A stretch of DNA of 64,000 bases from Macrostomum lignano (GCA_002269645.1 NIVC01000604.1:186001-250000), one strand, 5' to 3'. Positions 9,004 through 38,699 are shown, numbered from the stretch's first letter. A program made the numbers and translations. The notes: generated by a model not told the origin, from the letters alone.

Positions 9004-9302
9004 ATGGGTTCCAAGTCGTCTAAGATTGCATTTGAGATCTGCTCAGTAACTTCAGATTACAAAGTAGCAGACCAGGGGCCAATGGTAACCCTGCACATGT
9101 ACGACAAGGATGGCAACCTCTCGCCTGCATTCTCACTTAGTAATGCATTCTTTCAAGAGGAGGACGGCAGTGTGCGGGACAAGTTCACAATACCGCAAGC
9201 CAGCTGGTGCCGCAAAGGATTTGGCAAAGTGCACAAAATTGAATTCTGGCGAGATGCGTCTGGTGTGGAGTTTGACTGGTTTTGCGAGAAAGTTATTATC
9301 AG
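9004..9302 (+). CDS. Lipoxygenase-like gene, coding exon 1 (PLAT/LH2 domain)
   Basis: ATG at 9004; PLAT-like beta-strand pattern ending in DWFCEKVII; donor AG|GTAAAG after 9302 (phase 2). Confidence 0.85.
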
Positions 9303-9344
9303 GTAAAGCATTTCTTTATTCTATTTGTAAGAAATTATGGAATT

Positions 9345-10410: not shown

Positions 10411-10471
10411 CGCATATCTCATACCATCAAAACTATCTAACAGCCTATGGACAAATCACCCACCCCTGCAG

Positions 10472-10834
10472 AGACAGGCGCCAGGGCATCGGCGGCAAGT
10501 GGCTGTATTCCTACTTCCCTGTGCACCGCTGGATCCACCCGGACAGGCACTATTTCTCCCACGACTGCGAGTCCTTCCTGCCGGCCGACGACCCCATGCC
10601 GGACGAGCGCATCGCCGAGCTCACCGAGCGCAGGAACAATTTCCAACTCTATCAGCGAGGTCCCGGCCTGCCCCTGGAGCTGCAGTGTGTACCAGCTGAC
10701 GAGACATTCACGTTCGATAATCGATGGGCGATTGAAAAGACTAAGGATGAAATTATAATGAGCAAGGGCCTGGATGTGCACTATTCCAGTGTGGACCATT
10801 TTGCTAGCTTTGACGATATGGTTAACTACTATAG
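10472..10834 (+). CDS. Lipoxygenase-like gene, exon 2 (end of PLAT, start of catalytic domain)
   Basis: Acceptor CCCCTGCAG| at 10471 joins exon 1 in frame. YFPVHRWI matches the PLAT C-terminal FP..RW motif; LPADDP and LPADE-like (VPADETF) motifs follow. Donor AG|GTAGGC, phase 2. Confidence 0.9.
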
Positions 10835-10886
10835 GTAGGCTTTTTATTATTGCTTTGGGCAGGGTTAGTAACGATAACCTTGATAT

Positions 10887-11265: not shown

Positions 11266-11433
11266 TCTAACGGAAAATCCTATTTATTGACTTTAACGCC
11301 ATCAACAATAGCCCTTCATCGCTGTCGAAACTCGCTGGTTTGAACCAATTCGCAGTGCGTTTTATTTTATTAAAAATCCGAATGTCTGACAATACAATGC
11401 AGTATTGAAGAATCTCGTCCCCGCCTTATCCAG

Positions 11434-12204
11434 GACGTACAGTATCACGGAGCCGCTGTCGGTGCAGCGCTGGTCTCCAATGGCGCAGGAGCACGACATT
11501 GTGTTCGGCGCTCAGCGCCTCCGCGGCTGCAACCCGTTCGCTGTCCGAGTGTGCAAAGCAATCCCGGACAACTTCGGCGTGGCCGTCGAATGGCTCAAGC
11601 CGCACCTGGAGGGCTGGACGCTGCAGCACATTCTCGACGCCAGGCGATTGTTCATTGTTGACTACGCCATCATGGAGGGCGTGGAGTGCAAGAACGGCAG
11701 GCAGTTCTGCTCCCCAATGGCCCTGTTTTTTTGGACTGAGCGGCTACAGCTGGTGCCGCTGGCCATTCAGCTCAACCAGACCGTCGGCCCGGCCTCGCCA
11801 GTCATCATGCCGACTGACAGCCCTCACGCCTGGCTGCAGGCCAAGCTGTGGTTCAATCTGGCTGATTCCTGCTATCACCTGGTTGTGCACCGCCTAATGC
11901 ACCATCTGATCCTTGAAGGCGTGTACGTTGCCATGCGGAAGAACCTGGCCCAATCGCATCCTATCTATCAGGCTTTGGCGCCGCATTTTCAACACCTGCT
12001 AGCGGTGAACTCGCGGCTGAAGGACTGGTTCTTCAACGACAGCGGCTGGATTGGCCAGAATATGCAGCTGTCCCGCAAGGGCATCCGGCAGCTGCTGAAG
12101 AAGGCTTATAAAGGCTGGCGATTCGATCAGCACGTTAATATTTATCGGGAGCTGGAGTCGCGCGGAGTGTACGATTCAAGTGTGCTGCCCGGATACCCCT
12201 ATCG
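11434..12204 (+). CDS. Lipoxygenase-like gene, exon 3 (catalytic core)
   Basis: Acceptor TTATCCAG| at 11433. Contains FGAQRLRGCNP, LVPLAIQL, WLQAKLW, H-x4-H (HRLMHH), HPIYQ and YPYR. Donor CG|GTAAGG. Confidence 0.95.
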
Positions 12205-12325
12205 GTAAGGTTTCACTAAGCCTCATAGAATAGCCTCATTGTTTCTCGACAAGAGGGGTTTTATATCTCTGACACAGCCTCTTTCACAACTCCCGAAACG
12301 TTAAGTTAGGGTTAAGGTTAAGCTT

Positions 12326-14378
12326 GAAGATATGAAGTTTTGTAGATATGAAATGTTGGGGATATGAAGTGTCGGGGATATACAGTGGCGGAGATATGAA
12401 GTGTCGGAGATATGAAATGTCAGGGATATGAAATGTCAGGGATATGAAATGTTGGGGATATACAGTGTCGGAGATATGAAATGTCAGGGATATGAAGTGT
12501 CGGGGATATACAGTGGCGGAGTTATGAAGTGTCGGAGATATGAAATGTCAGGGATATGAAATGTCAGGGATATGAAATGTCAGGGATATGAAGTGTCGGG
12601 GATATACAGTGGCGGAGATATGAAGTGTCGGAGATATGAAATGTCAGGGATATGAAATGTCAGGGATATGAAATGTCAGGGATATGAAGTGTCGGGGATA
12701 TACAGTGGCGGAGATATGAAGTGTCGGAGATATGAAATGTCAGGGATATGAAATGTCAGGGATATGAAATGTCAGGGATATGAAATGTCAGGGATATGAA
12801 ATGTCAGGGATATGAAATGTTGGGATATGAAGTGTCGGGGATATACAGTGGCGGAGATATGAAATGTCAGGGATATGAAATGTTGGGGATATACAGTGGC
12901 GGAGATATGAAATGTCAGGGATATGAAATGTCAGGGATATGAAATGTTGGGATATGAAGTGTCGGGGATATACAGTGGCGGAGATATGAAGTGTCGGAGA
13001 TATGAAATGTCAGGGATATGAAGTGTCGGGGATATACAGTGGCGGAGATATGAAATGTCAGGGATATGAAATGTCAGGGATATGAAATGTCAGGGATATG
13101 AAATGTCAGGGATATGAAATGTTGGGATATGAAGTGTCGGGGATATACAGTGGCGGAGATATGAAATGTCAGGGATATGAAATGTCAGGGATATGAAATG
13201 TCAGGGATATGAAATGTTGGGATATGAAGTGTCGGGGATATACAGTGGCGGAGATATGAAGTGTCGGAGATATGAAATGTCAGGGATATGAAGTGTCGGG
13301 GATATACAGTGGCGGAGATATGAAATGTCAGGGATATGAAATGTCAGGGATATGAAATGTCAGGGATATGAAATGTTGGGATATGAAGTGTCGGGGATAT
13401 ACAGTGGCGGAGATATGAAGTGTCGGAGATATGAAATGTCAGGGATATGAAATGTTGGGGATATACAGTGGCGGAGATATGAAGTGTCGGAGATATGAAA
13501 TGTCAGGGATATGAAATGTCAGGGATATGAAATGTCAGGGATATGAAATGTCAGGGATATGAAATGTCAGGGATATGAAATGTTGGGGATATACAGTGGC
13601 GGAGATATGAAGTGTCGGAGATATGAAATGTCAGGGATATGAAGTGTCGGGGATATACAGTGGCGGAGTTATGAAGTGTCGGAGATATGAAATGTCAGGG
13701 ATATGAAATGTCAGGGATATGAAATGTCAGGGATATGAAGTGTCGGGGATATACAGTGGCGGAGATATGAAGTGTCGGCGATATGAAATGTCAGGGATAT
13801 GAAATGTCAGGGATATGAAATGTCAGGGATATGAAGTGTCGGGGATATACAGTGGCGGAGATATGAAGTGTCGGAGATATGAAATGTCAGGGATATGAAA
13901 TGTCAGGGATATGAAATGTCAGGGATATGAAATGTCAGGGATATGAAATGTCAGGGATATGAAGTGTCGGGGATATACAGTGGCGGAGTTATGAAGTGTC
14001 GGAGATATGAAATGTAAGGGATATGAAATGTCAGGGATATGAAATGTCAGGGATATGAAATGTCAGGGATATGAAGTGTCGGGGATATACAGTGGCGGAG
14101 TTATGAAGTGTCGGAGATATGAAATGTCAGGGATATGAAATGTCAGGGATATGAAGTGTCGGGGATATACAGTGGCGGAGATATGAAGTGTCGGAGATAT
14201 GAAATGTCAGGGATATGAAATGTCAGGGATATGAAATGTCAGGGATATGAAGTGTCGGGGATATACAGTGGCGGAGTTATGAAGTGTCGGAGATATGAAA
14301 TGTCAGGGATATGAAATGTCAGGGATATGAAATGTTGGGGATATGAAGTGTCGGGGATATACAGTGGCGGAGATATGA
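12326..14378. repeat. 17-18-bp minisatellite (GATATGAAATGTCAGG-type) with variant units in LOX intron 3
   Basis: Tandem array with interspersed GATATACAGTGGCGGA variants. Confidence 0.96.
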
Positions 14379-14550: not shown

Positions 14551-14902
14551 CGAAGACGCCATGCTGCTCCACAAAGTGATCAACGGCTACAGCGACCGCC
14601 TGTCCCGTCACTACTACGCCAACCCTATGGAGGCGATGAAGCGCCGACTAATGGAAGACATCGAACTGCAGGCCTGGTGGGTTGAAATGACCAACCCGTT
14701 AGAGAAGGGCGGCCTCGGACTCAAAGGTCTGCCCGGCAAAAATGGCATTCAACACGTAGACGAGTTGGTGTCGCTGATAACCAACTTCCTGTTTATGATC
14801 TGCGTGCAGGGCTCCGCCGCCTGGAATCCCCAGTTTGACGAGTACGGATTCGCGCCTAATTATCCCCTGGCCCTGCACGGCTGCCTGCCGCAGGATCCTG
14901 CC
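14551..14902 (+). CDS. Lipoxygenase-like gene, exon 4
   Basis: Acceptor CGCCAG| restores YPYR-ED-AMLL. Contains DIELQAWW, LITNFLF and QFDEYGFAPNYP. Donor GCC|GTGAGT, phase 0. Confidence 0.93.
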
Positions 14903-14949
14903 GTGAGTTTCGCCTTGTTGCCTGTATTTAGAGCTGAGGCGGCACTGTT

Positions 14950-15290
14950 TGGGTGGGTGTTGGTTGGGGGAGTGTTGGGGGTGGGGGTTGGTTGGGGGAT
15001 TGTTGGAGTGGGTGTTGGTTGGGGATTGTTGGAGTGGGTGTTGGTTGGGGATTGTTGGGATGGGTGTTGGTTGGGGGATTGTTGGGGGTGGGTGTTGGTT
15101 GGGGAATTGTTGGAGTGGGTGTTGATTGGGGATTGTTGGGATGGGTGTTGGTTGGGGGATTGTTGGAGTGGCTGTCGATTGGGGGATTGTTGGAGTGGGT
15201 GTTGGTTGGGGGATTGTTGGAGTGGGTGTTGGTGGGGGATTGTTGGGATGGGTGTTGGTTGGGGATTGTTGGGATGGGTGTTGGTTGGGC
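14950..15290. repeat. G/T-rich ~27-bp minisatellite in LOX intron 4
   Basis: GGGGATTGTTGGAGTGGGTGTTGGTT-type units. Confidence 0.9.
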
Positions 15291-15419
15291 AGGATTGCTA
15301 TGGTTGTTGTCAGGTTTAGTAAGATGGGTTGTGTGTCAGTTTAGAAACGTAATTATTCCGGATTATTAAATGTATTAAATTATTATTGCTTCACCTGGAT
15401 TCACCCAAAAACATCGCAG

Positions 15420-15583
15420 GAGGACCTGGCTCTAGACGAGAGCCTCCAGACGCTGCCCTGCAAGCGGGAGTTCCTAGACACGCTGCTGTCCTTTCGCCTG
15501 TGCCAGCGCCAGCGAGGCAGCCGGCTTGGCGAGTACGAGCTGCAGCTGAACCACGATCCAGCGGCCGTCAGGATGCTGCAAGA
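15420..15583 (+). CDS. Lipoxygenase-like gene, exon 5
   Basis: Acceptor CATCGCAG|; translates EDLALDESLQTLPCKREFLDTLL...LGEYE...DPAAVRMLQ. Donor GA|GTGAGT, phase 2. This exon is missing from the ORF track frame. Confidence 0.85.
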
Positions 15584-15717
15584 GTGAGTTTTTATTCTGC
15601 TGTTGTGTTTCTCAGACTGATAAATTACTCACATCAATTTACGCACTACGAAATAAGGATTCATTTTTCACCCGGTTAAAAGCATTCGACAATTCAGTAT
15701 GGTTTCATAGGTTTATT

Positions 15718-15894
15718 GACTCGCCAGTGTTGCTGGTCCGCTCTGTGCACAATTCCATTATTGTGCAACAGCATAGCAGTCTGGGGTCAACGCGAGTCTA
15801 CAGAACGCGTGAGATTGGCCTTCTCCACGAGTCACTGCCGCTGTGCCTCCTTGCACCTTTTGGCTTGACGACTCACTAACGGCTGATTACAGTC
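15718..15894 (+). ncRNA. H/ACA snoRNA copy 1
   Basis: Full hairpin-H-hairpin-ACA; two C>T variants remain G-U compatible. Confidence 0.88.
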
Positions 15895-16221
15895 TCTGAA
15901 ATCTTTTTAGTAATCAGTATGACAAAAACCAAATAATGCTGTAACCTGCTGTAAAACAAAGACTCTAGTTAATATTTAAACAGTTCTTGACTCGCCTACA
16001 ACTTAATAGGCCTTAATGCGTTCTTGGTTGGTGGTCTAATAATTATGCGAAAGTCACTTAAAATGGTTAAACTACGAGTAAGTTAAAATTAGGCTGCATA
16101 ATGTCAGGTAAAGATATCCACGAACTTACAACGGGCAAAAGCACTCTTGTCGTGATACAAGGCATGAAAAGTGCCTGAACAATACATTTTAGTGCTTTAG
16201 CAGACAGGCAGTTTGTTTGCT

Positions 16222-16398
16222 GACTCGCCAGTGTTGCCGGTCCGCTCTGTGCATAATTTCATTGATGTGCAACAGCATAGCAGTCTGGGGTCAACGCGAG
16301 TCTACAGAACGCGTGAGATCGGCCTTCTCCACGAGTCACTGCCGCTATGCCTCCTTGCACCTTTTGGCTTGACGACTCACTAATGGCTGATTACAGTC
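16222..16398 (+). ncRNA. H/ACA snoRNA copy 2
   Basis: Full copy, boxes and pockets intact. Confidence 0.88.
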
Positions 16399-16756
16399 TG
16401 ATATTGTTTTAGCAATAATTTATGGCACGGACCAAACGAAGATTCGACTAGTCGTTAAACATTGACTCAAATTAATATGTAAGCGGTCCACGACTTGATT
16501 ACCACCTTAAAATGATAAATAAGTTTGCAATTAGCTCATCTTTTGTCCAAATACATATCGTAAGCTTTGAATTCAAGCAAAACGTTTGATGTGACTTGTA
16601 GAGGCCTTTTTTGAACTTGACAAATCCGATTACAAATAAAGACACTCTCAAGATACTAAACAAGCCACATGTGTAGTGATCAAAGGCATGCAAAATGTAC
16701 CTCAGCGAAACAGTGATGTAGCTATTGGACAGACGGGCTAGTCAATGATAGTCTCT

Positions 16757-16933
16757 GACTCGCCAGTGTTGCCGGTCCGCTCTGTGCACAAATCCATTAT
16801 TGTGCAACAGCATAGCAGTCTGGGGTCAACGCGAGTCTACAGAACGCGTGAGATCGGCCTTCTCCACGAGTCACTGCCGCTGTGCCTTCTTGCACCTTTT
16901 GGCTTGACGACTCACTAACGGCTGATTACAGTC
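16757..16933 (+). ncRNA. H/ACA snoRNA copy 3
   Basis: Full copy, boxes and pockets intact. Confidence 0.88.
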
Positions 16934-17256
16934 AGATATCTTCTTAGTAATCAGTAAATCAAGGACCAAATAGGGTTTAACCAGTCGTGAAACAAAGACT
17001 CTAGTTATATTTAAACAGTTCTTGGCTCGACTACAACTTAATAGACCTTAATGCATTCTTGGTAATAACTATGCGAAAGTCACTTTAAAATGATTAACTA
17101 CGAGTAAGTTACTAGTGTAAAATTAAGCAACATAATGTCAGGTAAAGATATTTACAAAATTATAAAATCACTTTTGTACAGTAGTGATCCAGTGCATTAA
17201 GAATGCCTGAGAAGTGCAACATCTCTGGTGCTTTAGCAACAGGCAGTTTGTTTGCT

Positions 17257-17433
17257 GACTCGCCAGTGTTGCCGGTCCGCTCTGTGCACAATTTCATTAT
17301 TGTGCAACAGCATAGCAGTCTGGGGTCAACGCGAGTCTACAGAACGCGTGAGATCGGCCTTCTCCACGAGTCGCTGCCGCTGTGCCTTCTTGCACCTTTT
17401 GGCTTGACGTCTCACTAACGGCTGATTACAGTC
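17257..17433 (+). ncRNA. H/ACA snoRNA copy 4
   Basis: Full copy, boxes and pockets intact. Confidence 0.88.
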
Positions 17434-17782
17434 TGATCTATATTGTTGGTAATAAATAGTACGGCAGGACCAAACAGATTTTTCTAGTCGGTACACTGTG
17501 ACTCAGATTAATATCCAAACAGTCTGACTAGATTACAACTTCAAAAGGACAAACAACTTTTGAATTGGCATCGCTTTTGTCTAAATACGAGCGCATATAT
17601 CAGTAAGCTTCAAATTGACTTAGGACCTTTGATGTAACTTGAACGTCTCTGCACTTTCAAATAAAAGCAGTTCTATTGAATGTATATGGAAATTGGAAGT
17701 TAACCTGTATGATGACAAATAGAGATATCTGTACAATGATGGAGTAGATTTTCAGCAGAAAGGTTAATTAATGTTAGTCTCT

Positions 17783-17959
17783 GACTCGCCAGTGTTGCCG
17801 GTCCGCTCTGTGCACAAATCCATTATTGTGCAACAGCATAGCAGTCTGGGGTCAACGCGAGTCTACAAAACGCGTGAGATCGGCCTTCTCCACGAGTCAC
17901 TGCCGCCGTGCCTTCTTGCACCTTTTGGCATGACGACTCACTAACGGCTGATTACAGTC
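17783..17959 (+). ncRNA. H/ACA snoRNA copy 5
   Basis: H box variant ACAAAA still fits ANANNA. Confidence 0.88.
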
Positions 17960-18254
17960 TCTGATATTGTTTTAGCAATATTCTTACGGCGAGGACCAAC
18001 CGAATATTTAACCAGTCATTAAACAATGACTTGGATCATTTTCTAAACAGTCCATCACTTGATGCAAGTTAGCAGTTAGATCCCTAATACTCGTAGATAA
18101 GCAAGAATCACTCTTAATTGAATTAACTAAATGAAAATTAACCCGCATAATGCCAGATAAAGATATATACAAGCTTAAATAGACAAAAGCACTTTTGTAG
18201 TGATCCTGTGCATTAAGAATTCCTGAGAAGTGCGCAACAGGCAGTTTGTTTGCT

Positions 18255-18431
18255 GACTCGCCAGTGTTGCCGGTCCGCTCTTTGCACAATTTCATTATTG
18301 CGCAACAGCATAGCAGTCTGGGGTCAACGCGAGTCTACAGAACGCGTGAGATCGGCCTTCTCCACGAGTCACTGCCGCTGTGCCTCCTTGCACCTTTTGG
18401 CTTGACGACTCACTAACGGCTGATTACAGTC
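18255..18431 (+). ncRNA. H/ACA snoRNA copy 6
   Basis: Copy 1 position + 2537. Confidence 0.88.
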
Positions 18432-18758
18432 TCTGAAATCTTTTTAGTAATCAGTATGACAAAAACCAAATAATGCTGTAACCTGCTGTAAAACAAAGAC
18501 TCTAGTTAATATTTAAACAGTTCTTGACTCGCCTACAACTTAATAGGCCTTAATGCGTTCTTGGTTGGTGGTCTAATAATTATGCGAAAGTCACTTAAAA
18601 TGGTTAAACTACGAGTAAGTTAAAATTAGGCTGCATAATGTCAGGTAAAGATATCCACGAACTTACAACGGGCAAAAGCACTCTTGTCGTGATACAAGGC
18701 ATGAAAAGTGCCTGAACAATACATTTTAGTGCTTTAGCAGACAGGCAGTTTGTTTGCT

Positions 18759-18935
18759 GACTCGCCAGTGTTGCCGGTCCGCTCTGTGCATAATTTCATT
18801 GATGTGCAACAGCATAGCAGTCTGGGGTCAACGCGAGTCTACAGAACGCGTGAGATCGGCCTTCTCCACGAGTCACTGCCGCTATGCCTCCTTGCACCTT
18901 TTGGCTTGACGACTCACTAATGGCTGATTACAGTC
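18759..18935 (+). ncRNA. H/ACA snoRNA copy 7
   Basis: Copy 2 position + 2537. Confidence 0.88.
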
Positions 18936-19293
18936 TGATATTGTTTTAGCAATAATTTATGGCACGGACCAAACGAAGATTCGACTAGTCGTTAAACATT
19001 GACTCAAATTAATATGTAAGCGGTCCACGACTTGATTACCACCTTAAAATGATAAATAAGTTTGCAATTAGCTCATCTTTTGTCCAAATACATATCGTAA
19101 GCTTTGAATTCAAGCAAAACGTTTGATGTGACTTGTAGAGGCCTTTTTTGAACTTGACAAATCCGATTACAAATAAAGACACTCTCAAGATACTAAACAA
19201 GCCACATGTGTAGTGATCAAAGGCATGCAAAATGTACCTCAGCGAAACAGTGATGTAGCTATTGGACAGACGGGCTAGTCAATGATAGTCTCT

Positions 19294-19470
19294 GACTCGC
19301 CAGTGTTGCCGGTCCGCTCTGTGCACAAATCCATTATTGTGCAACAGCATAGCAGTCTGGGGTCAACGCGAGTCTACAGAACGCGTGAGATCGGCCTTCT
19401 CCACGAGTCACTGCCGCTGTGCCTTCTTGCACCTTTTGGCTTGACGACTCACTAACGGCTGATTACAGTC
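19294..19470 (+). ncRNA. H/ACA snoRNA copy 8
   Basis: Copy 3 position + 2537. Confidence 0.88.
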
Positions 19471-19793
19471 AGATATCTTCTTAGTAATCAGTAAATCAAG
19501 GACCAAATAGGGTTTAACCAGTCGTGAAACAAAGACTCTAGTTATATTTAAACAGTTCTTGGCTCGACTACAACTTAATAGACCTTAATGCATTCTTGGT
19601 AATAACTATGCGAAAGTCACTTTAAAATGATTAACTACGAGTAAGTTACTAGTGTAAAATTAAGCAACATAATGTCAGGTAAAGATATTTACAAAATTAT
19701 AAAATCACTTTTGTACAGTAGTGATCCAGTGCATTAAGAATGCCTGAGAAGTGCAACATCTCTGGTGCTTTAGCAACAGGCAGTTTGTTTGCT

Positions 19794-19970
19794 GACTCGC
19801 CAGTGTTGCCGGTCCGCTCTGTGCACAATTTCATTATTGTGCAACAGCATAGCAGTCTGGGGTCAACGCGAGTCTACAGAACGCGTGAGATCGGCCTTCT
19901 CCACGAGTCGCTGCCGCTGTGCCTTCTTGCACCTTTTGGCTTGACGTCTCACTAACGGCTGATTACAGTC
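19794..19970 (+). ncRNA. H/ACA snoRNA copy 9
   Basis: Copy 4 position + 2537. Confidence 0.88.
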
Positions 19971-20319
19971 TGATCTATATTGTTGGTAATAAATAGTACG
20001 GCAGGACCAAACAGATTTTTCTAGTCGGTACACTGTGACTCAGATTAATATCCAAACAGTCTGACTAGATTACAACTTCAAAAGGACAAACAACTTTTGA
20101 ATTGGCATCGCTTTTGTCTAAATACGAGCGCATATATCAGTAAGCTTCGAATTGACTTAGGACCTTTGATGTAACTTGAACGTCTCTGCACTTTCAAATA
20201 AAAGCAGTTCTATTGAATGTATATGGAAATTGGAAGTTAACCTGTATGATGACAAATAGAGATATCTGTACAATGATGGAGTAGATTTTCAGCAGAAAGG
20301 TTAATTAATGTTAGTCTCT

Positions 20320-20496
20320 GACTCGCCAGTGTTGCCGGTCCGCTCTGTGCACAAATCCATTATTGTGCAACAGCATAGCAGTCTGGGGTCAACGCGAGTC
20401 TACAAAACGCGTGAGATCGGCCTTCTCCACGAGTCACTGCCGCCGTGCCTTCTTGCACCTTTTGGCATGACGACTCACTAACGGCTGATTACAGTC
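20320..20496 (+). ncRNA. H/ACA snoRNA copy 10
   Basis: Copy 5 position + 2537. Confidence 0.88.
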
Positions 20497-20791
20497 TCTG
20501 ATATTGTTTTAGCAATATTCTTACGGCGAGGACCAACCGAATATTTAACCAGTCATTAAACAATGACTTGGATCATTTTCTAAACAGTCCATCACTTGAT
20601 GCAAGTTAGCAGTTAGATCCCTAATACTCGTAGATAAGCAAGAATCACTCTTAATTGAATTAACTAAATGAAAATTAACCCGCATAATGCCAGATAAAGA
20701 TATATACAAGCTTAAATAGACAAAAGCACTTTTGTAGTGATCCTGTGCATTAAGAATTCCTGAGAAGTGCGCAACAGGCAGTTTGTTTGCT

Positions 20792-20968
20792 GACTCGCCA
20801 GTGTTGCCGGTCCGCTCTGTGCACAATTTCATTATTGCGCAACAGCATAGCAGTCTGGGGTCAACGCGAGTCTACAGAACGCGTGAGATCGGCCTTCTCC
20901 ACGAGTCACTGCCGCTGTGCCTCCTTGCACCTTTTGGCTTGACGACTCACTAACGGCTGATTACAGTC
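20792..20968 (+). ncRNA. H/ACA snoRNA copy 11
   Basis: Copy 6 position + 2537. Confidence 0.88.
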
Positions 20969-21295
20969 TCTGAAATCTTTTTAGTAATCAGTATGACAAA
21001 AACCAAATAATGCTGTAACCTGCTGTAAAACAAAGACTCTAGTTAATATTTAAACAGTTCTTGACTCGCCTACAACTTAATAGGCCTTAATGCGTTCTTG
21101 GTTGGTGGTCTAATAATTATGCGAAAGTCACTTAAAATGGTTAAACTACGAGTAAGTTAAAATTAGGCTGCATAATGTCAGGTAAAGATATCCACGAACT
21201 TACAACGGGCAAAAGCACTCTTGTCGTGATACAAGGCATGAAAAGTGCCTGAACAATACATTTTAGTGCTTTAGCAGACAGGCAGTTTGTTTGCT

Positions 21296-21472
21296 GACTC
21301 GCCAGTGTTGCCGGTCCGCTCTGTGCATAATTTCATTGATGTGCAACAGCATAGCAGTCTGGGGTCAACGCGAGTCTACAGAACGCGTGAGATCGGCCTT
21401 CTCCACGAGTCACTGCCGCTATGCCTCCTTGCACCTTTTGGCTTGACGACTCACTAATGGCTGATTACAGTC
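21296..21472 (+). ncRNA. H/ACA snoRNA copy 12
   Basis: Copy 7 position + 2537. Confidence 0.88.
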
Positions 21473-21830
21473 TGATATTGTTTTAGCAATAATTTATGGC
21501 ACGGACCAAACGAAGATTCGACTAGTCGTTAAACATTGACTCAAATTAATATGTAAGCGGTCCACGACTTGATTACCACCTTAAAATGATAAATAAGTTT
21601 GCAATTAGCTCATCTTTTGTCCAAATACATATCGTAAGCTTTGAATTCAATCAAAACGTTTGATGTGACTTGTAGAGGCCTTTTTTGAACTTGACAAATC
21701 CGATTACAAATAAAGACACTCTCAAGATACCAAACAAGCCACATGTGTAGTGATCAAAGGCATGCAAAATGTACCTCAGCGAAACAGTGATGTAGCTATT
21801 GGACAGACGGGCTAGTCAATGATAGTCTCT

Positions 21831-22007
21831 GACTCGCCAGTGTTGCCGGTCCGCTCTGTGCACAAATCCATTATTGTGCAACAGCATAGCAGTCTGGGGT
21901 CAACGCGAGTCTACAGAACGCGTGAGATCGGCCTTCTCCACGAGTCACTGCCGCTGTGCCTTCTTGCACCTTTTGGCTTGTCGACTCACTAACGGCTGAT
22001 TACAATC
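21831..22007 (+). ncRNA. H/ACA snoRNA copy 13
   Basis: Full copy ending ACA-ATC. Confidence 0.87.
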
Positions 22008-22138
22008 TGTTGTTTTTGAGAATGGTTAATTGCCATTTTCATATTATATTTCTTTGGTGATTAGGTTGAAAGAATTGAAAAACGAATAGTAATTTCTCGA
22101 AACTGCATTAGACTTTAAGGCTGGTAATTAGGTACGAT

Positions 22139-22210
22139 GCGGAGTTGCTCAGCGGTAAACGCGTCTTACTCTCTTGCCAAACTCCTAGTTCGACTCCATG
22201 CGCGACCGCA
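22139..22210 (+). mobile_element. Degenerate tRNA-like / tRNA-derived SINE head interrupting the array
   Basis: A-box-like TTGCTCAGCGGTA, B-box-like AGTTCGACTCC, partial GCGG/CCGC acceptor stem. The anticodon arm does not pair. Confidence 0.4.
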
Positions 22211-22667
22211 TTCATTTGTTGCTTTTACACAGAAAATTTCCCGTAGCTATCTTACGATTCACCCATGAGAGCCAACCCAAGACACAGAGTGTAGATGTTT
22301 GAGGATTAGAAGGTCGGAGTCGATGTACAGTGTACACCTTGTATGAGCATGCTTTCTGAAGACCACAGGATGGACAGAATTGCCTCAGCGCTGGTTGTGA
22401 GACGATGTCGCCGATACCGTTGCACCAGAGTGTCCACAACCTTCCAGATATTGTTGTTAGGGCTGTTAAGTGATAAATGTTCTACTGGTAATAAAGAAGC
22501 AAAGATAATTACAGATAAATCCTTGTATGCCATGTAGTGTCTAAAGAAAGGTGTCTTGCGGAGCAATGGATCATTTTAATAGTGACAAAACGCCCATTAT
22601 GCAATAAGATTACCAGGCAGTCATCCGCGTAGCATTGGCTTATACACCATTGGTTACTTAGGCTGCT

Positions 22668-22844
22668 GACTCGCCAGTGTTGCCGGTCCGCTCTGTGCAT
22701 AATTTCATTGATGTGCAACAGCATAGCAGTCTGAGGTCAACGCGAGTCTACAGAACGCGTGAGATCGGCCTTCTCCACGAGTCACTGCCGCTATGCCTCC
22801 CTGCACCTTTTGGCTTGACGACTCACTAATGGCTGATTACAGTC
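22668..22844 (+). ncRNA. H/ACA snoRNA copy 14
   Basis: Full copy, boxes and pockets intact. Confidence 0.87.
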
Positions 22845-23202
22845 TGATATTGTTTTAGCAATAATTTATGGCACGGACCAAACGAAGATTCGACTAGTCG
22901 TTAAACATTGACTCAAATTAATATGTAAGCGGTCCACGACTTGATTACCACCTTAAAATGATAAATAAGTTTGCAATTAGCTCATCTTTTGTCCAAATAC
23001 ATATCGTAAGCTTTGAATTCAAGCAAAACCTTTGATGTGACTTGTAGAGGCCTTTTTTGAACTTGACAAATCCGATTACAAATAAAGACACTCTCAAGAT
23101 ACTAAACAAGCCACATGTGTAGTGATCAAAGGCATGCAAAATGTACCTCAGCGAAACAGTGATGTAGCTATTGGACAGACGGGCTAGTCAATGATAGTCT
23201 CT

Positions 23203-23379
23203 GACTCGCCAGTGTTGCCGGTCCGCTCTGTGCACAAATCCATTATTGTGCAACAGCATAGCAGTCTGGGGTCAACGCGAGTCTACAGAACGCGTGAGAT
23301 CGGCCTTCTCCACGAGTCACTGCCGCTGTGCCTTCTTGCACCTTTTGGCTTGACGTCTCACTAACGGCTGATTACAGTC
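23203..23379 (+). ncRNA. H/ACA snoRNA copy 15
   Basis: Full copy, boxes and pockets intact. Confidence 0.87.
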
Positions 23380-23707
23380 TGATATCTTTTTAGTAATCAG
23401 TATATCAAGGACCAAATAGGGTTTAACCAGTCGTTAAACAAAGACTCTAGTTAATATTTAAACAGTTCTTGGCTCGCCTACAACTTAATAGACTTTAGTG
23501 CGTTCTTGGTTTGTGCCTTTAATAACTATGGGAAGTCACTTTAAAATGATTAAACTACGAGTTAGTTAAAATTAGGCTGCATAATGTCAGGTGAAGATAT
23601 TTACCAAATTACAACTTACAAAAGCACTTTTTTAGTGATCAAGTGCATTAAAAATGCCTGACAAATGCAAAGTATCTAGTGCTTTAGCAACAGGCAGTTT
23701 GTTTGCT

Positions 23708-23884
23708 GACTCGCCAGTGTTGCCGGTCCGCTCTGTGTATAATTCCAATATTGTGCAACAGCATAGCAGTCTGGGGTCAGCGCGAGTCTACAGAACGCGT
23801 GAGATCGGCCTTCTCCACGAGTCACTGCCGCTGTGCCTTCTTGCACCTTTTGGCTTGACGACTCACTAACGGCTGATTACATTA
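23708..23884 (+). ncRNA. H/ACA snoRNA copy 16
   Basis: Full copy ending ACA-TTA, 81 nt before the 3' splice site. Pocket variant GTCAG can form G-U with the target. Confidence 0.85.
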
Positions 23885-23965
23885 CTTACTTTACATGGTA
23901 GAGCAAAGATTAGGAGCGAAGACAGTCAAGAAAAAAATGGAACCCGCCACCGCTAATATTCCCAG

Positions 23966-24086
23966 GTTCAAGGAGGAATTGGCGGCCGCCAGCGCCAGCA
24001 TCAAATCGCGCAACAGCAACCGCGACCCGGTGTACCTGTACACTGCACTGGATCCTGAGCGCATGCTGAATCACCTGGTTGTGTGA
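23966..24086 (+). CDS. Lipoxygenase-like gene, terminal exon 6
   Basis: CTAAT branch-like site and TTCCCAG| acceptor. Translates (E)FKEELAAASASIKSRNSNRDPVYLYTALDPERMLNHLVV*, a LOX C-terminal pattern. The six exons sum to 2070 nt = 689 aa + stop. Confidence 0.88.
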
Positions 24087-25504: not shown

Positions 25505-26915
25505 ATTATACTGATGGATATCTATATCCTGCTCTGATGGATTTCTATATCCTACTCTGGATGTCTATACCCTGCTCTGATGGATGTCTATATCCTACTC
25601 TGGATGTCTATACCCTGCTCTGATGGATTTCTATATCCTACTCTGAATGTTTATACCCTGCTCTGATGGATGTCTATATCCTACTCTGGATGTCTATACC
25701 CTGCTCTGATGGATTTCTATATCCTACTCTGGATGTCTATACCCTGCTCTGATGGATGTCTATATCCTGCTCTGGATGTCTATACCCTGCTCTGATCGAT
25801 ATCTATATCCTACTCTGGATGTCTATACCCTGCTCTGATCGATATCTATATCCTGCTCTAATGGTGTCTATATCCTGCTCTAATCGATGTTTATATCCTC
25901 CTCTGATGGATGTCAATATCCTGTTCTGATAGATGTCTATATCCTGCTCTAATCAATGTCTATATCCTGCTCTAATCGATGTTTATATCCTCCTCTGATG
26001 GATGTCTATATCCTGCTCTGACGGATGTCTATATCCTGCTCTAATCGATGTTTATATCCTGCTCTAATGAATGTCTATATACTGCTCTAATCCATGTCTA
26101 TATCCTGCTCTGATGAATGTCTATATCCTGCTCTTATAGATGTCTATATCCTGCTCTTATGGATGTCTATATCCTGCTCTTATGGATGTCTATATCCTGC
26201 TCTAATAGTGTCTATATCCTTCTCTAAGTGATGTCTACATCCTACTCTGATGGATGTCAATATCCTGCTCTATTGAATGTCTATATCCTGCTCTAATGAA
26301 TTTCTATATCCTGCTCTGATCGATATCTATATCCTGCTCTAATGGTGTCTATATCCTGCTCTAATGAATGTCAATATCCTGCTCTGATGGATGTCAATAT
26401 CCTGCTCTGATGGATGTCTATATCCTGCTCTCATGAATTTCTATATCCTGCTCTTATGGATGTCTATATCCTGCTCTAATCCATGTCTATATCCTGCTCT
26501 GATGAATGTCTATATCCTGCTCTTATGGATGTCTATATCCTGCTCTTATGGATGTCTATATCCTGCTCTTATGGATGTCTATATCCTGCTCTGATGGATG
26601 TCAATATCCTGCTCTAATAGTGTCTATATCCTTCTCTAAGTGATGTCTACATCCTACTCTGATGGATGTCAATATCCTGCTCTAATAGTGTCTATATCCT
26701 TCTCTAAGTGATGTCTACATCCTACTCTGATGGATGTCAATATCCTGCTCTAATGAATGTCTATATCCTGCTCTAATGAATGTCTATATCCTGCTCTAAT
26801 GAATGTCTATATCCTGCTCTAATGAATGTCTATTTCCTGCTCTTATGGATGTCTATATCCTGCTGTGATGGATGTCTATATCCTGCTGTGATGGATGTCT
26901 ATATCCTGCTGTGAT
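25505..26915. repeat. ~23-bp minisatellite (GATGGATGTCTATATCCTGCTCT)
   Basis: Tandem array read directly. Confidence 0.95.
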
Positions 26916-27884
26916 ATATGCACGAGCGTATATTTCCGAGACTGATAGATGTCTATATGAGATTGACGGATGACTATATTCGAGACTGATATATCCGACA
27001 ACAGAGCGATCAAACACTGACTGCTTCAGTCAAGCACTGCAAGTTTGGTGTTGAGTCAAGCCGCTTGTTGAGCAGCTCTGACAGGCAGACACGCAAGTCA
27101 GATCACCGCCAGAAGGAGCAACTCCCTGAATTCGTCTCTTAGCGCCACTCCTCTACTTCGCAGAAAGTTTGAGTGTCTTTAGCCGCGGGGAAGTCGGCTG
27201 GCTGGGAAGAGGGGCGGCGGGAGGCCGAGACCCCCAACGGCTTGAAGAGGTCCCGCTGATGCTAGCAATTAGTGGCCGCAGAAAGAGAGACAGACGGACA
27301 GACAGACAGGCTGCAGATAGGCAGCCAGTCGCACAATAAGACGCTCTTCTCGCCTGCTCTCCCCGCTGCCTCGGCATCGCCTCTCGAGGCGCAGTTTTAA
27401 CAGTGTAGCACACAGACACGGGTTTTGACTGACAGCTGCCAGTCAGTATCTTGGACGGTGTCAGGGGGAAGGCTGCCGGCCTAAGCAAGCTCAAGGAGGA
27501 CCGGGAGTGATTGTTGAGGGCGCCTGATTGGCAGCGGGGCCTCCCGTCGATGGAGGGTGTCGGGAGGGAGCGGGGGCGGCCTGTCCATGATGATGCTACT
27601 CTGGGGCCGGGCAGGCGGCCAGATTGACAGCTGGATATGCCGAGGGGACAGTGAAAGCTGCGACTGGCCTTTCCCGGGATTTCTGCGGCAACGGTTGCAG
27701 CAACTGGCGGAGCAGGAATTGGAAGCTGCGCTGATCCGTTCTCCCGCTGCGGTGGAGCAACAAACAAATGGATATAATTGCGGGAGTTACATTTATTGAG
27801 GGGTTAGAAGAAACTAACCAAAATAGGTCAAATGACTCGTCAGTTCTGATCGAAATATAAAAAACTATTGCGATAACTGAGAAG

Positions 27885-30800
27885 GCAGGAATAGATACTT
27901 GGATAGACATCATGAAGGCAGGAATAGATACTTGGATAGAGATCATGAAGGCAGGAATAGATGCTTGGATAGAGATCATGAAGGCAGGAATAGATACTTG
28001 GATAGACATCATGAAGGCAGGAATAGATACTTGGATAGAGATCATGAAGGCAGGAATAGATACTTGGATAGAGATCGTGAAGGCAGGAATAGATACTTGG
28101 ATAGAGATGATGAAGGCAGGAATAGATACTTGGATAAAGATCATGAAGACAGGAATAGATTTTTGGATAGAGATCATGAAGGTGGAATAGATGCTTGGAT
28201 AGAGATCGTGAAGGCAGGAATAGATACTTGGATAGAGATCGTGAAGGCAGGAATAGATATTTGGATAGAGATCATGAAGGCAGGAATAGATACTTGGATA
28301 GAGATCATGAAGGCAGGAATAGATACTTGGATAGAGATCGTGAAGGCAGGAATAGATACTTGGTTAGAGATCGTGAAGGCAGGAATAGATATTTGGATAG
28401 AGATCATGAAGGCAGGAATAGATACTTGGATAGAGATCGTGAAGGCAGGAATAGATACTTGGATAGAGATCGTGAAGGCAGGAATAGATACTTGGATAGA
28501 GATGATGAAGGCAGGAATAGATACTTGGATAGAGATTATGAAGACAGGAATAGATTTTTGGATAGAGATCATGAAGGTGGAATAGATGCTTGGATAGAGA
28601 TCATGAAGGCAGGAATAGATACTTGGATAGAGATCATGAAGACAGGAATAGATTTTTGGATAGAGATCATGAAGGTGGAATAGATGCTTGGATAGAGATC
28701 ATGAAGGCAGGAATAGATATTTGGATAGAGACCGTGAAGGCAGGAATAGATACTTGGATAGAGATGATGAAGGCAGGAATAGATACTTGGATAGAGATCA
28801 TGAAGACAGGAATAGATTTTTGGATAGAGATCATGAAGGTGGAATAGATGCTTGGATAGAGATCATGAAGGCAGGAATAGATATTTGGATAGAGATCATG
28901 AAGGTGGAATAGATGCTTGGATAGAGATCATGAAGGCAGGAATAGATACTTGGATAGAGATCATGAAGGTGGAATAGATGCTTGGATAGAGATCATGAAG
29001 GCAGGAATAGATACTTGGATAGAGATCGTGAAGGCAGGAATAGATACTTGGATAGAGATCATGAAGGCAGGAATAGATACTTGGATAGAGATCATGAAGG
29101 CAGGAATAGATACTTGGATAGAGATCATGAAGGCAGGAATAGATTTTTGGATAGAGATCATGAAGGTGGAATAGATGCTTGGATAGAGATCGTAAAGGCA
29201 GGAATAGATGCTTGGATAGAGATCACGAAGGCAGGAATAGATACTTGGATAGAGATCATGAAGGCAGGAATAGATACTTGGATAGAGACCGTGAAGGCAG
29301 GAATTGATACTTGGATAGAGATCGTGAAGGCAGGAATAGATACTTGGATAGAGATCGTGAAGGCAGGAATAGATATTTGGATAGAGACCGTGAAGGCAGG
29401 AATAGATGCTTGGATAGAGATGATGAAGGCAGGAATAGATACTTGGATAGAGATCATGAAGGCAGGAATAGATTTTTGGATAGAGATCATGAAGGTGGAA
29501 TAGATGCTTGGATAGAGATCGTGAAGGCAGGAATAGATACTTGGATAGAGATCGTGAAGGCAGGAATAGATACTTGGATAGAGATCATGAAGGTGGAATA
29601 GATGCTTGGATAGAGATCATGAAGGCAGGAATAGATATTTGGATAGAGATCATGAAGGTGGAATAGATATTTGGATAGAGATCATGAAGGCAGGAATAGA
29701 TACTTGGATAGAGATCATAAAGGCAGGAATAGATACTTGGATAGAGATCATGAAGGCAGGAATAGATACTTGGATAGAGACCGTGAAGGCAGGAATAGAT
29801 TTTTGGATAGAGATCATGAAGGTGGAATAGATGCTTGGATAGAGATCGTGAAGGCAGGAATAGATACTTGGATAGAGATCATGAAGGCAGGAATAGATAC
29901 TTGGATAGAGACCGTGAAGGCAGGAATTGATACTTGGATAGAGATCATGAAGGCAGGAATTGATACTTGGATAGAGATCATGAAGGCAGGAATAGATACT
30001 TGGATAGAGACCGTGAAGGCAGGAATTGATACTTGGATAGAGATCATGAAGGCAGGAATAGATACTTGGATAGAGACCGTGAAGGCAGGAATAGATTTTT
30101 GGATAGAGATCATGAAGGTGGAATAGATGCTTGGATAGAGATCGTGAAGGCAGGAATAGATACTTGGATAGAGATCATGAAGGCAGGAATAGATACTTGG
30201 ATAGAGACCGTGAAGGCAGGAATTGATACTTGGATAGAGATCATGAAGGCAGGAATTGATACTTGGATAGAGATCATGAAGGCAGGAATAGATACTTGGA
30301 TAGAGACCGTGAAGGCAGGAATTGATACTTGGATAGAGATCATGAAGGCAGGAATAGATACTTGGATAGAGATCATGAAGGCAGGAATAGATACTTGGAT
30401 AGAGATCATGAAGGCAGGAATTGATACTTGGATAGAGATCGTGAAGGCAGGAATAGATACTTGGTTAGAGATCGTGAAGGCAGGAATAGATATTTGGATA
30501 GAGACCGTGAAGGCAGGAATAGATGCTTGGATAGAGATCATGAAGGCAGGAATAGATACTTGGATAGAGATCATGAAGGCAGGAATAGATACTTGGATAG
30601 AGATCATGAAGGCAGGAATAGATTTTTGGATAGAGATCATGAAGGTGGAATAGATGCTTGGATAGAGATCGTGAAGGCAGGAATAGATACTTGGATAGAG
30701 ATCGTGAAGGCAGGAATAGATACTTGGATAGAGATCATGAAGACAGGAATAGATGCTTGGATAGAGATCATGAAGGCAGGAATAGATATTTGGATAGAGA

Positions 30801-31057
30801 TCATGAAGGTGGAATAGATGCTTGGATAGAGATCATGAAGGCAGGAATAGATACTTGGATAGAGATCATAAAGGCAGGAATAGATACTTGGATAGAGATC
30901 ATGAAGGCAGGAATAGATACTTGGATAGAGATCATGAAGGTGGAATAGATGCTTGGATAGAGATCGTGAAGGTGGAATAGATGCTTGGATAGAGATCATA
31001 AAGGCAGGAATAGATACTTGGATAGAGATCATGAAGGCAGGAATAGATATTTGGATA
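27885..31057. repeat. 33-bp minisatellite (GATAGAGATCATGAAGGCAGGAATAGATACTTG) with shorter variant units
   Basis: Tandem array; source of the DRDHEGRNRYL / WIEIMKAGIDT pseudo-ORFs. Confidence 0.97.
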
Positions 31058-31644
31058 TATTTTTAGCTTAGCGACCAGACGTCTCCACCTGCTAGCTCGG
31101 CCAGATAATATTAATTGCCCTTGGAGACTCAGATAAATTTTCAAAATTGTTTCCAGGCAGTTGATGATTGACAGGTTCGAGCAAATTTTCGGGGACGAAG
31201 AAATCGCCTTTTGTCTCCAAGCGAATAGGGGGAACTGGGCCCAGGGTTGCTAGGCCTGAGTTACGCTTGGATCCCACCCCGCACAAGTCTGCAGAGCTGC
31301 GGTGGAGTCTGCGACACAGTGCATGTTTGAGCTGCATCGGACTGCTCAGGTTTAACAATGTTTTTTTTCCGCTATCTTATCGCTGCAGCCGGCAAAGCTC
31401 GATGGGAGGCGGGGTGGATGAAAGGCCGAAGCCTCGGTTTGCTTTTAATCTTAGCCGCTCCGAGTTCGCTTTGCGAGGCCGGCGCCTCCACACAAAGCGT
31501 CCAATTTTTTGAATCGGGACCATTTTTTGCCGGTTCAGCTGGCGCGGAGGTCGAATATTCCCATGAATCCCGACCGCATGTCTGATGCGATTTGGGCCAA
31601 GTTGGCTCTGCTGTTTGCAAGTGCTTCACCTGGCTTCATTGTTA

Positions 31645-32430
31645 GAGTGGGTGTGGAATGGTGGGGCTGTTACTGAGGGTGTCACAGAGTGGGTGTGGAA
31701 TGGTGGAGCTGTTACTGAGGGTGTTACAGAGTGGGTGTGGAATGGTGGGGCTGTTACTGAGGGTGTCACAGAGTGGGTGTGGAATGGTGGGGCTGTTACT
31801 GAGGGTGTTACAGAGTGGGTGTGGAATGGTGGGGCTGTTACTGAGGGTGTCACAGAGTGGGTGTGGAATGGTGGGGCTGTTACTGAGGGTGTTGCAAAGT
31901 GGGTGTGGAATGGTGGGGCTGTTACTGAGGGTGTTGCAGAGTGGGTGTGGAATGGTGGGGCTGTTACTGAGGGTGTTGCAGAGTGGGTGTGGAATGGTGG
32001 GGCTGTTACTGAGGGTGTTGCAGAGTGGGTGTGGAATGGTGGGGCTGTTACTGAGGGTGTCACAGAGTGGGTGTGGAATGGTGGGGCTGTTACTGAGGGT
32101 GTTGCAAAGTGGGTGTGGAATGGTGGGGCTGTTACTGAGGGTGTCACAGAGTGGGTGTGGAATGGTGGGGCTGTTACTGAGGGTGTTGCAGAGTGGGTGT
32201 GGAATGGTGGAGCTGTTACTGAGGGTGTTACAGAGTGGGTGTGGAATGGTGGAGCTGTTACTGAGGGTGTCACAGAGTGGGTGTGGAATGGTGGAGCTGT
32301 TACTGAGGGTGTCACAGAGTGGGTGTGGAATGGTGGGGCTGTTACTGAGGGTGTCACAGAGTGGGTGTGGAATGGTGGAGCTGTTACTGAGGGTGTCACA
32401 GAGTGGGTGTGGAATGGTGGGGCTGCTACT
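31645..32430. repeat. 42-bp minisatellite (GAGTGGGTGTGGAATGGTGGGGCTGTTACTGAGGGTGTCACA)
   Basis: About 18-19 near-identical units, open in several frames. Confidence 0.96.
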
Positions 32431-34061: not shown

Positions 34062-34712
34062 CCTGGTGGACAGTGGCAGAGACAGAGGAGGCTGGCTGGT
34101 GGACAGTGGCAGAGACAGGGGAGGCTGGCTGGTGGACAGTGGCAGAGACAGAGGAGGCTGGCTGGTGGACAGTGGCAGAGACAAGGGAGGCTGGCTGGTG
34201 GACAGTGGCAGAGACAGAGGAGGCTGGCTGGTGGACAGTGGCAGAGACAGGGGAGGCTGCCTGGTGGACATTGGCAGAGACAGGGGAAGCTGGCTGGTGG
34301 ACATTGGCAGAGACAGGGGAGGCTGGCTGGTGGATAGTGGCAGAGACAGGGGAGGCTGGCTGGTGGACAGTGGCAGAGACAGGGGAGGCTGCCTGGTGAA
34401 CAGTGGCAGAGACAGGGGAGGCTGGCTGGTGGATAGTGGCAGAGACAGGGGAGGCTGGCTGGTGGATAGTGGCAGAGACAGGGGAGGCTGGCTGGTGGAC
34501 AGTGGCAGAGACAGGGGAGGCTGGCTGGTGAACAGTGGCAGAGACAGGGGAGGCTGCCTGGTGGACAGTGGCAGAGACAGGGGAGGCTGGCTGGTGCACA
34601 GTGGCAGAGACAGGGGAGGCTGCCTGGTGGATAGTGGCAGAGACAGGGGAGGCTGCCTGGTGGACAGTGGCAGAGACAGGGGAGGCTGGCTGGTGGACAG
34701 TGGCAGAGACAG
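34062..34712. repeat. 33-bp minisatellite (GGCTGGCTGGTGGACAGTGGCAGAGACAGGGGA)
   Basis: About 20 units. Confidence 0.96.
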
Positions 34713-38014: not shown

Positions 38015-38345
<331 letters not shown>

Positions 38346-38699
38346 CATGTCGCAGGTGTGCATCTGATTAACCAGCATCAGCACACACATATTCCAAGCG
38401 AGCAAGATTGCTGTCCATGTCTACCTGTGTGCAGCACAGCACAAACTGTGCTAGCCGCAACGCAGCCCCGTCTGTCTGCCTACTCGCCTGTCTGTCAGGT
38501 GATTTGTTGTTTCACTTTTTAATCCTTCATTCCCGCGGGTTGCTGAAATAATTCTGCCCGGCAACTCGCAGCCCGGTCGGAGCAGCCGCCCGCCCCCACT
38601 CCGGCGCAATCGCCCGCTGCCTGTCAAAACTGCTGGGCTCGCGTCTTCCTCTGCAGACCTGCCGACTGCAGCGGCCAGCGCCCGCCAGCTTTCCTTCTC

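Follow-up and report, generated by a model that had tools for sequence, protein, structure and literature searches.

The segment at positions 16,757 to 16,933 of a 64,000-nt stretch of Macrostomum lignano DNA (NIVC01000604.1:186001-250000, whose full length is referred to here as the window) raises the question of whether one small RNA could guide two separate pseudouridylations in 18S rRNA. An earlier note on this DNA had assigned two guide pockets to the segment, with strands GTGTT/GTCAA and CTCCAC/ACTAA, and had predicted that these would direct modification of the uridines equivalent to yeast U1191 and yeast Psi1290. The elements of the segment, in which RNA positions 1-177 correspond by direct reading of the sequence to window positions 16757-16933, are as follows:

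16757..16933, plus strand: candidate box H/ACA snoRNA copy of 177 nt, consisting of hairpin 1, box H, hairpin 2, and ACA followed by 3 nt
16766..16770 (RNA 10-14), plus strand: 5′ pocket strand of hairpin 1, GUGUU, pairing with 18S AACAC 1205-1209, 3′ of U1203-C1204
16825..16829 (RNA 69-73), plus strand: 3′ pocket strand of hairpin 1, GUCAA, pairing with 18S UUGAC 1198-1202
16839..16844 (RNA 83-88), plus strand: box H, ACAGAA, which fits ANANNA, in the single-stranded hinge
16862..16867 (RNA 106-111), plus strand: 5′ pocket strand of hairpin 2, CUCCAC, pairing with 18S GUGGAG 1304-1309 and abutting the upper stem
16914..16918 (RNA 158-162), plus strand: 3′ pocket strand of hairpin 2, ACUAA, pairing with 18S UUAGU 1297-1301
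16928..16930 (RNA 172-174), plus strand: box ACA, followed by 3 nt, with between-unit conservation stopping 1-3 nt past the box

All four pocket strands claimed earlier could be read at exactly these positions. The 5′ part of the segment runs GACUCGC-CAGUGUUG-...-GGUCAAC-GCGAGUC-U-ACAGAA, and the part that follows ACAGAA runs ...-GAUCGGCC-UUCUCCAC-GAGUC...GACUC-ACUAAC-GGCUGAUU-ACA-GUC. The minimum-free-energy fold of the plus strand (-59.5 kcal/mol, z = -1.71) contained exactly two hairpins, and both this fold and the centroid fold placed these at 1-81 and about 90-176 with a single-stranded hinge between them, while the fold of the minus strand of the same segment lacked the two-hairpin H/ACA architecture. 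In hairpin 1, the lower stem is formed by 1-7/75-81 and the upper stem starts from C16-G67 (16-19/64-67), leaving RNA 8-15 and 68-74 as the full pocket strands. In hairpin 2, the lower stem (96-103/164-171) and the upper stem (112-116/153-157) enclose the full pocket strands 104-111 and 158-163. The 14-15 nt rule invoked by the earlier note for both 3′ pockets was borne out, as we counted 14 nt from the start of the 3′ guide strand to the box in both hairpins (G69-U82 to box H; A158-U171 to ACA), which agrees with the 14-16 nt that separate target U and box in the H/ACA class. Because a G15.G68 mismatch separates the guide strands of hairpin 1 from the first Watson-Crick pair of its upper stem, the hairpin 1 pocket is slightly less canonical than that of hairpin 2, and its distance to box H becomes 15 nt when counted from G68.

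This architecture follows the textbook scheme for eukaryotic box H/ACA guide RNAs, and every feature of the H/ACA class that is visible in sequence is present. No CAB box (UGAG) was found in the terminal loops at 36-43 (AUCCAUUA) and 130-135 (CUUCUU), the sole UGAG of the RNA being located in the hinge at 93-96, and because the terminal loops have no CAB box the identity of an H/ACA scaRNA, or Cajal-body guide, was rejected.

The earlier note had taken its 18S motifs from conserved eukaryotic 18S, and both turned out to be present in the host's own 18S, which was read from the rDNA of the same genome (L004:307-2119, 1813 nt). The first target, AAUUUGAC-U-C-AACACGGG, holds the motif UUGAC-U1203-C-AACAC with U1203 unpaired, and the second, UUCUUAGU-U-G-GUGGAGCG, holds UUAGU-U1302-G-GUGGAG with U1302 unpaired. 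Against these motifs the proposed pairing of 5+5 and 6+5 was confirmed as Watson-Crick throughout. The RNA is in this way a predicted guide for both the helix-31 U (GAC-U-CAACAC), the SNORA13/snR35-type function, at U1203, and for UUAGU-U-GGUGGAG (yeast 1290, human 1347), the SNORA4/snR83-type function, at U1302. Both uridines belong to the same 18S domain and are separated by 99 nt, a spacing common to yeast 1191/1290, human 1248/1347, chicken 1206/1305 and Entamoeba 1216/1315. The two motifs are identical in yeast.

The specificity of the pairing was examined by testing each U of 18S, 5.8S and 28S for a bipartite pairing that runs from the top of the pocket outwards. For hairpin 1, U1203 (5+5 bp) was the only match without G-U pairs in these three rRNAs, the next-best site, close to the 5′ end of 28S, having 11 bp of which two are G-U. 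For hairpin 2, U1302 (5+6, all Watson-Crick) was the only match of at least 8 pairs. The guide-target duplexes are short, at 10 bp for hairpin 1 and 11 bp for hairpin 2; shuffled hairpin 1 pockets reached at least 10 Watson-Crick pairs anywhere in the rRNAs in 18/5000 trials (0.36%), and shuffled hairpin 2 pockets reached at least 11 in 5/5000 (0.1%). Because both of these rare matches also correspond to known, deeply conserved pseudouridine sites, coincidence is very unlikely.

Taken as a whole, the unit is probably a canonical eukaryotic box H/ACA snoRNA of M. lignano and, as predicted from its pockets, a dual guide for U1203 and U1302. It might instead be a real H/ACA snoRNA in which one hairpin is a working guide while the complementarity of the other is fortuitous, or redundant with a dedicated guide elsewhere, a reading that we regard as unlikely. 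It would accommodate the less canonical pocket of hairpin 1, with its G15.G68 mismatch, its duplex of 10 bp and its alternative 11-bp 28S site with G-U pairs, and it has precedent in the many H/ACA snoRNAs with one orphan hairpin and in the single-target H/ACA RNAs of Neurospora (PMC2780460). A second guide for U1302 was sought with the pattern CTCCAC-N30-60-ACTAA-N9-10-ACA, which gave 272 matches compared to 888 for a reversed control. Among the 100 matches listed, a stem of at least 5 bp abutting the pocket was present only in the array copies described below, and the coverage of 100 listed matches out of 272 leaves this reading some room. Against it, both pockets match conserved pseudouridine sites by Watson-Crick pairs only, each match being rare among shuffled pockets, and both are, A73G aside, invariant in 40 genomic copies while loops and spacers vary.

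These copies became apparent from blastn of the unit against the window, which placed the segment in an array:

15718..23881, plus strand: array of 16 tandem copies, all in sense orientation, 94-100% identical to the unit

The first eight copies start at 15718, 16222, 16757, 17257, 17783, 18255, 18759 and 19294, and the other eight at 19794, 20320, 20792, 21296, 21831, 22668, 23203 and 23708; the copy at 19294-19470 is identical to that at 16757-16933. Five unit types, spaced by 504, 535, 500, 526 and 472 nt, make up a 2537-bp higher-order repeat. A DNA search of the whole assembly (764.4 Mb, 5269 contigs) brought the genome total to 40 copies on three contigs, with 16 on the contig of the window (C604), 13 on C149 and 11 on C4311, and found no dispersed or diverged copies beyond these 40 near-identical ones. 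Each of the three arrays adjoins the same lipoxygenase exons, and the three contigs are alleles or homeologues of one locus in a neopolyploid genome.

Between the five unit types, the RNA segment (174 nt) is 94-98% identical in pairwise comparison (mean 96%), while the spacers are 56-76% identical (mean 62%, with 52% for shuffled spacers). Conservation begins at G1 and ends within 3 nt past ACA, with indels and divergence elsewhere. Because the RNA segment is 96% identical compared to 62% for the spacers, the RNA itself is under constraint. The distinct copies differ at 25 columns, and varying positions make up 2/57 of the guide strands, box letters and lower stems, as opposed to 23/120 elsewhere (Fisher p = 0.005). 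The GUGUU, CUCCAC and ACUAA strands are invariant in 40/40 genomic copies, and the sole guide-strand variant is A73G in GUCAA, which is carried by the final copy of every array and still allows a G-U pair with the rRNA. A C99U change in the core likewise preserves pairing, as a U-G pair in the lower stem, and the box H variant of four copies, ACAAAA, is still ANANNA.

Across 11 distinct copies, 98% of the paired cells remained paired. We observed no compensatory double changes, four one-sided changes that preserve pairing as wobbles, and six pairs broken in few copies; covariation is absent because the copies, 94-100% identical, are too alike, and with so little variation the comparison speaks neither for nor against the structure. 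The stem-breaking changes among the 40 copies (C16.A67 in 4, U115.U154 in 5 and A126.C139 in 11) imply that not all copies need be functional, and some copies may be decaying.

This pattern also bears on whether the array could be an intronic tandem repeat, such as a satellite or an amplified fragment of a mobile element, whose H/ACA-like fold and rRNA complementarity are accidental. We consider this highly improbable. The region is indeed very rich in tandem repeats, the 2537-bp higher-order structure is recent, the fold z-score (-1.71) is modest and covariation is zero. Yet such a repeat would not have kept 177 nt at 96% identity while the interleaved spacers of 300-360 nt fell to 62%, nor would it carry ANANNA and ACA exactly 14 nt past two pockets that match known rRNA pseudouridine sites; moreover, the unit is confined to one locus in three allelic or homeologous contigs.

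Several features of the spacers can be recorded beside these copies. The array of C149 (about 154828-172126; L044, L045) carries a 16.97-kb insertion within a type-C spacer, without an ORF of at least 250 aa, and 6 bp of the spacer (window 17001-17006) are repeated at both junctions, resembling a target-site duplication. The spacer at 22008-22667 is 660 nt long compared to the usual length of about 330 nt, is unrelated to the other spacers and occurs once in the window. A spacer block (e.g. 17180-17230, which precedes the copy at 17257 by some 30-80 nt) shows some conservation between unit types and contains a C-box-like GUGAUC (AUGAUGA in one type), CUGA and the complementary ends GCACUU/AAGUGC. 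This GUGAUC...CUGA block, which is found before each copy at a distance of about 100 nt, was considered as a C/D snoRNA and rejected, being too short (~45 nt), with imperfect boxes that vary across unit types and no Rfam match.

The position of the array within its host gene was determined by tblastn of an M. lignano lipoxygenase (P0001) against the window, complemented by the splice junctions:

9004-9303, 10470-10835, about 11432-12208 and 14552-14917, plus strand: other lipoxygenase exons (tblastn)
15405..15583, plus strand: penultimate coding exon of the lipoxygenase host gene (tblastn)
15584..23965, plus strand: last intron of the lipoxygenase host gene, GT...AG, 8382 nt, containing the whole array in sense orientation (tblastn and junctions)
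23966..24086, plus strand: last coding exon of the lipoxygenase host gene (...FKEELAAASASIKSRNSNRDPVYLYTALDPERMLNHLVV, then stop; tblastn match 23966-24083)

The junction GA/GTGAGT ... CCCAG/G (the slash marking the splice site) joins the flanking exons to ...LQE-FKEE..., and the array fills most of the intron, its first copy starting 134 nt past the 5′ splice site and its last copy ending 84 nt before the 3′ splice site. A lipoxygenase encoded just upstream of the array is 96% identical to an M. lignano protein, with lipoxygenases of flatworms as the next closest sequences. In a paralogous lipoxygenase gene the last intron, at the corresponding position, measures only about 200 nt and holds zero copies of the unit; the array therefore arose or expanded in the host gene after the duplication.

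Animal snoRNAs are normally intronic and encoded on the sense strand, usually one per intron, from which they are released by exonucleolytic trimming. The presence of 16 copies in one intron departs from this pattern and would require additional endonucleolytic cleavage or internal splicing. The spacers of unit types A and C (e.g. at 17020/17021 and 17142/17143) contain a possible 3′ site UUUAAACAG/U and a possible 5′ site GUCAG/GUAAAG, which bracket about 120 nt and are not conserved in types B, D and E. These putative sites hint at optional mini-exons in the spacers, comparable to those spliced in SNORD116-type hosts, with one or two snoRNAs per sub-intron.

Multicopy snoRNA clusters are known from Drosophila intronic H/ACA genes (e.g. 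Psi18S-1377a-e) and from the mammalian SNORD115/116 arrays, and tandem snoRNA repeats from plants, trypanosomatids and Euglena. As in these clusters, the genes of the flatworm array are near-identical and arranged head-to-tail, and would be transcribed within a longer precursor; unlike them, the array consists of 16 copies of one snoRNA, apparently in a single intron of a protein-coding lipoxygenase gene, organised as a 5-unit higher-order repeat.

The site assignments given in the earlier note (yeast 1191 with snR35 and human 1248; yeast 1290 with snR83 and human 1347) agree with the literature (PMC3045603, PMC5699541, PMC3542256), as does its statement that yeast and human use separate RNAs for the two sites. 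The loop oligonucleotide GACUCAACACG contains a single U, yeast U1191, whose pseudouridylation by snR35 precedes its methylation by Nep1/Emg1 and its acp modification; the human equivalent, U1248, is guided by ACA13 (PMC3045603). For the second site, the guide of yeast Psi1290 is snR83, which also serves Psi1415 (PMC5699541), and that of human U1347 is ACA4 (PMC3542256). Separate RNAs are likewise used for 1216 and 1315 in Entamoeba (PMC3542256) and in chicken, where the ACA13 homologue uses 5+6 nt of its 5′ hairpin to address 18S-1206 and the ACA4 homologue uses 7+5 nt of its 3′ hairpin to address 18S-1305 (PMC2653536).

The flatworm RNA resembles SNORA13/snR35 in its predicted target, the helix-31 loop U, in the use of the 5′ hairpin as in chicken, and in its similarly short duplex (5+5, compared to 5+6 for the chicken SNORA13 homologue); SNORA13 is intron-encoded in animals, as is the flatworm RNA. 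Whereas the chicken homologue of SNORA13 is listed with one target and one copy, the flatworm RNA has a second predicted guide in the 3′ hairpin and comes in 40 tandem copies. With SNORA4/snR83 it shares the other predicted target, addressed by the 3′ hairpin as in chicken (6+5, compared to 7+5). However, yeast snR83 couples this site with Psi1415 while the flatworm RNA would couple the equivalent site with the Psi1191 equivalent, and the chicken SNORA4 homologue is a single copy in intron 9 of EIF4A2, as opposed to multiple copies in a lipoxygenase intron. The combination of the two targets in one RNA was not found in the species compared, namely yeast, human, chicken and Entamoeba.

A search with Rfam covariance models gave no family at its gathering score on the window and no snoRNA family at E <= 10 (901 and 191 nt), and hence no covariance-model match of the flatworm RNA to SNORA13/snR35 or SNORA4/snR83. 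Two matches that did appear were dismissed as chance, one of them a minus-strand C/D match to snR73 within a spacer (17.1 bits, the gathering score being 37; E = 4) and the other a match to Plastid-rpoB (E = 5.7). The missing Rfam match is the usual situation in flatworms, because homology searches in schistosome surveys yielded U3 as the only homologue of a known snoRNA (PMC2770079). As judged from its sequence, the flatworm RNA is not demonstrably a homologue of SNORA13/snR35 or SNORA4/snR83.

H/ACA genes commonly exchange guide hairpins by recombination, and the two-target pairing of the flatworm RNA illustrates such reshuffling. A further reading, to which we attach little weight, is that a single guide for helix 31 (the P-site loop with m1acp3-Psi) and helix 34 of the 18S head has been preserved or re-created here, in which case the 5′ hairpin would correspond to the working hairpin of vertebrate SNORA13 and the 3′ hairpin to that of SNORA4. 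If the dual-guide state were ancestral, the two vertebrate genes would have come from a duplication followed by reciprocal loss of one pocket each. If one particle were to engage both sites together, the two modifications would be coupled and folding of the 18S head might be aided, and such simultaneous engagement, if true, could explain the dosage of 40 copies.

It could also be asked whether the main role of the RNA is that of a folding or assembly chaperone that binds helix 31 and helix 34 simultaneously, with pseudouridylation being secondary and the copy number stoichiometric. The 99-nt distance between the targets within one 18S domain and the 40 gene copies would suit such a role; in addition, several snoRNAs have chaperone-like roles, and a non-canonical role has been reported for SNORA13. 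Nothing in the sequence, however, demands more than standard guiding: no extra conserved complementarity to rRNA occurs outside the pockets, and copy numbers of 16, 13 and 11 on the three contigs may reflect recent unequal crossing-over. We therefore hold a mainly chaperone-like function to be quite improbable.

Under the favoured interpretation as a dual guide, the array would be transcribed within the last intron of the lipoxygenase pre-mRNA, and each unit of 174-177 nt would, as expected for its H/ACA class, be bound co-transcriptionally by dyskerin, Nop10, Nhp2 and Gar1, with trimming that would stop at the base of hairpin 1 on one side and at ACA+3 on the other. Once in the nucleolus, the RNA would pair through its hairpin 1 pocket with 18S 1198-1202 and 1205-1209, presenting U1203, the helix-31 loop U that is m1acp3-pseudouridine in other eukaryotes, and through its hairpin 2 pocket with 1297-1301 and 1304-1309, presenting U1302, which corresponds to Psi1290 of yeast and Psi1347 of human. 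The Emg1 homologue would subsequently methylate Psi1203 at N1, and the Tsr3 homologue would add the aminocarboxypropyl group. We infer by analogy that the RNA is expressed, processed and assembled into an RNP, and that both uridines are modified. Homologues of Emg1, Tsr3 and dyskerin (DKCLD) were each found at three loci of the M. lignano genome, so that the enzymes for Psi and then for m1acp3-Psi are encoded.

The rDNA of the same genome provides an indirect hint regarding the first target. Among the 36 genomic matches to a helix-31 21-mer, 12 carried a C in place of the target U1203. When the rDNA units L007, L008 and L009 were compared with the U-type unit L004 (in which position 1203 is L004:1509), position 1203 was the only consistent substitution between C-type and U-type units over 2.6-3.0 kb of ETS-18S-ITS1-5.8S. 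The M. lignano assembly was polished by Pilon with both RNA-seq and DNA reads (PMC5730564), and m1acp3-Psi leaves an acp-dependent signature of reverse-transcriptase misincorporation in RNA-seq (bioRxiv 10.1101/840132). On the simplest reading, the C at 1203 may be such a misincorporation signature that was fixed by polishing, rather than a polymorphism, and T1203C in the rDNA would hint, indirectly, that U1203 is N3-modified in M. lignano. T1203C is no proof of pseudouridylation, because yeast without snR35 still adds acp (PMC3045603). That one rDNA unit in three carries C in place of the target U is nonetheless practically useful, as this may be a polishing artefact that marks a modified base.

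The rDNA also revealed a recurrent breakpoint at nt 1148 of 18S, at which the units L005 and L009 (on C1212 and C4525) are 5′-truncated exactly. Isolated 18S fragments spanning 1148-1215 were found in two non-rDNA contigs (L001 and L002; C85:824953 and C247:159173), together with a piece of ~65 nt from 1078-1142 located 1.3 kb away. An rDNA-specific insertion element could have left the breakpoint at 1148 as its footprint.

Overall, the locus appears, with good support from its sequence, to be a new H/ACA snoRNA whose target pairing was not found in the species compared and whose multicopy organisation within a single intron is unusual. Flatworm snoRNAs are almost uncharacterised, and in the literature searched M. 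lignano and snoRNAs were linked only in passing mentions, so the locus would supply a regeneration and stem-cell model animal with an H/ACA snoRNA to which targets can be assigned with confidence. The predicted guide would cover the initial step in making what is the most complex modification known from rRNA. Because a single intron of a protein-coding gene contains 16 near-identical snoRNAs, and because their number varies among contigs, the locus also poses a concrete question of processing.

Elsewhere in the window, minisatellites with periods of 16 to about 100 nt occur at exceptional density, several of them within the lipoxygenase introns (14000-14378, 14946-15289, 25511-26000, 27600-31060, 31570-32560, 33880-34790 and 36430-37410 for the window as a whole), which fits the reported tandem-repeat content of 15% for the M. 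lignano genome. A long open frame with a TALE-class homeodomain lies at 49688-51793 on the plus strand and is preceded by a long (CTGT)n-type microsatellite, of which another stretch occurs at 37890-38522. Finally, retroelement remnants with reverse-transcriptase-like frames on both strands occupy 53186-56650 and 62111-63992, including an LTR-type gag-protease-RT frame that runs past the end of the window.
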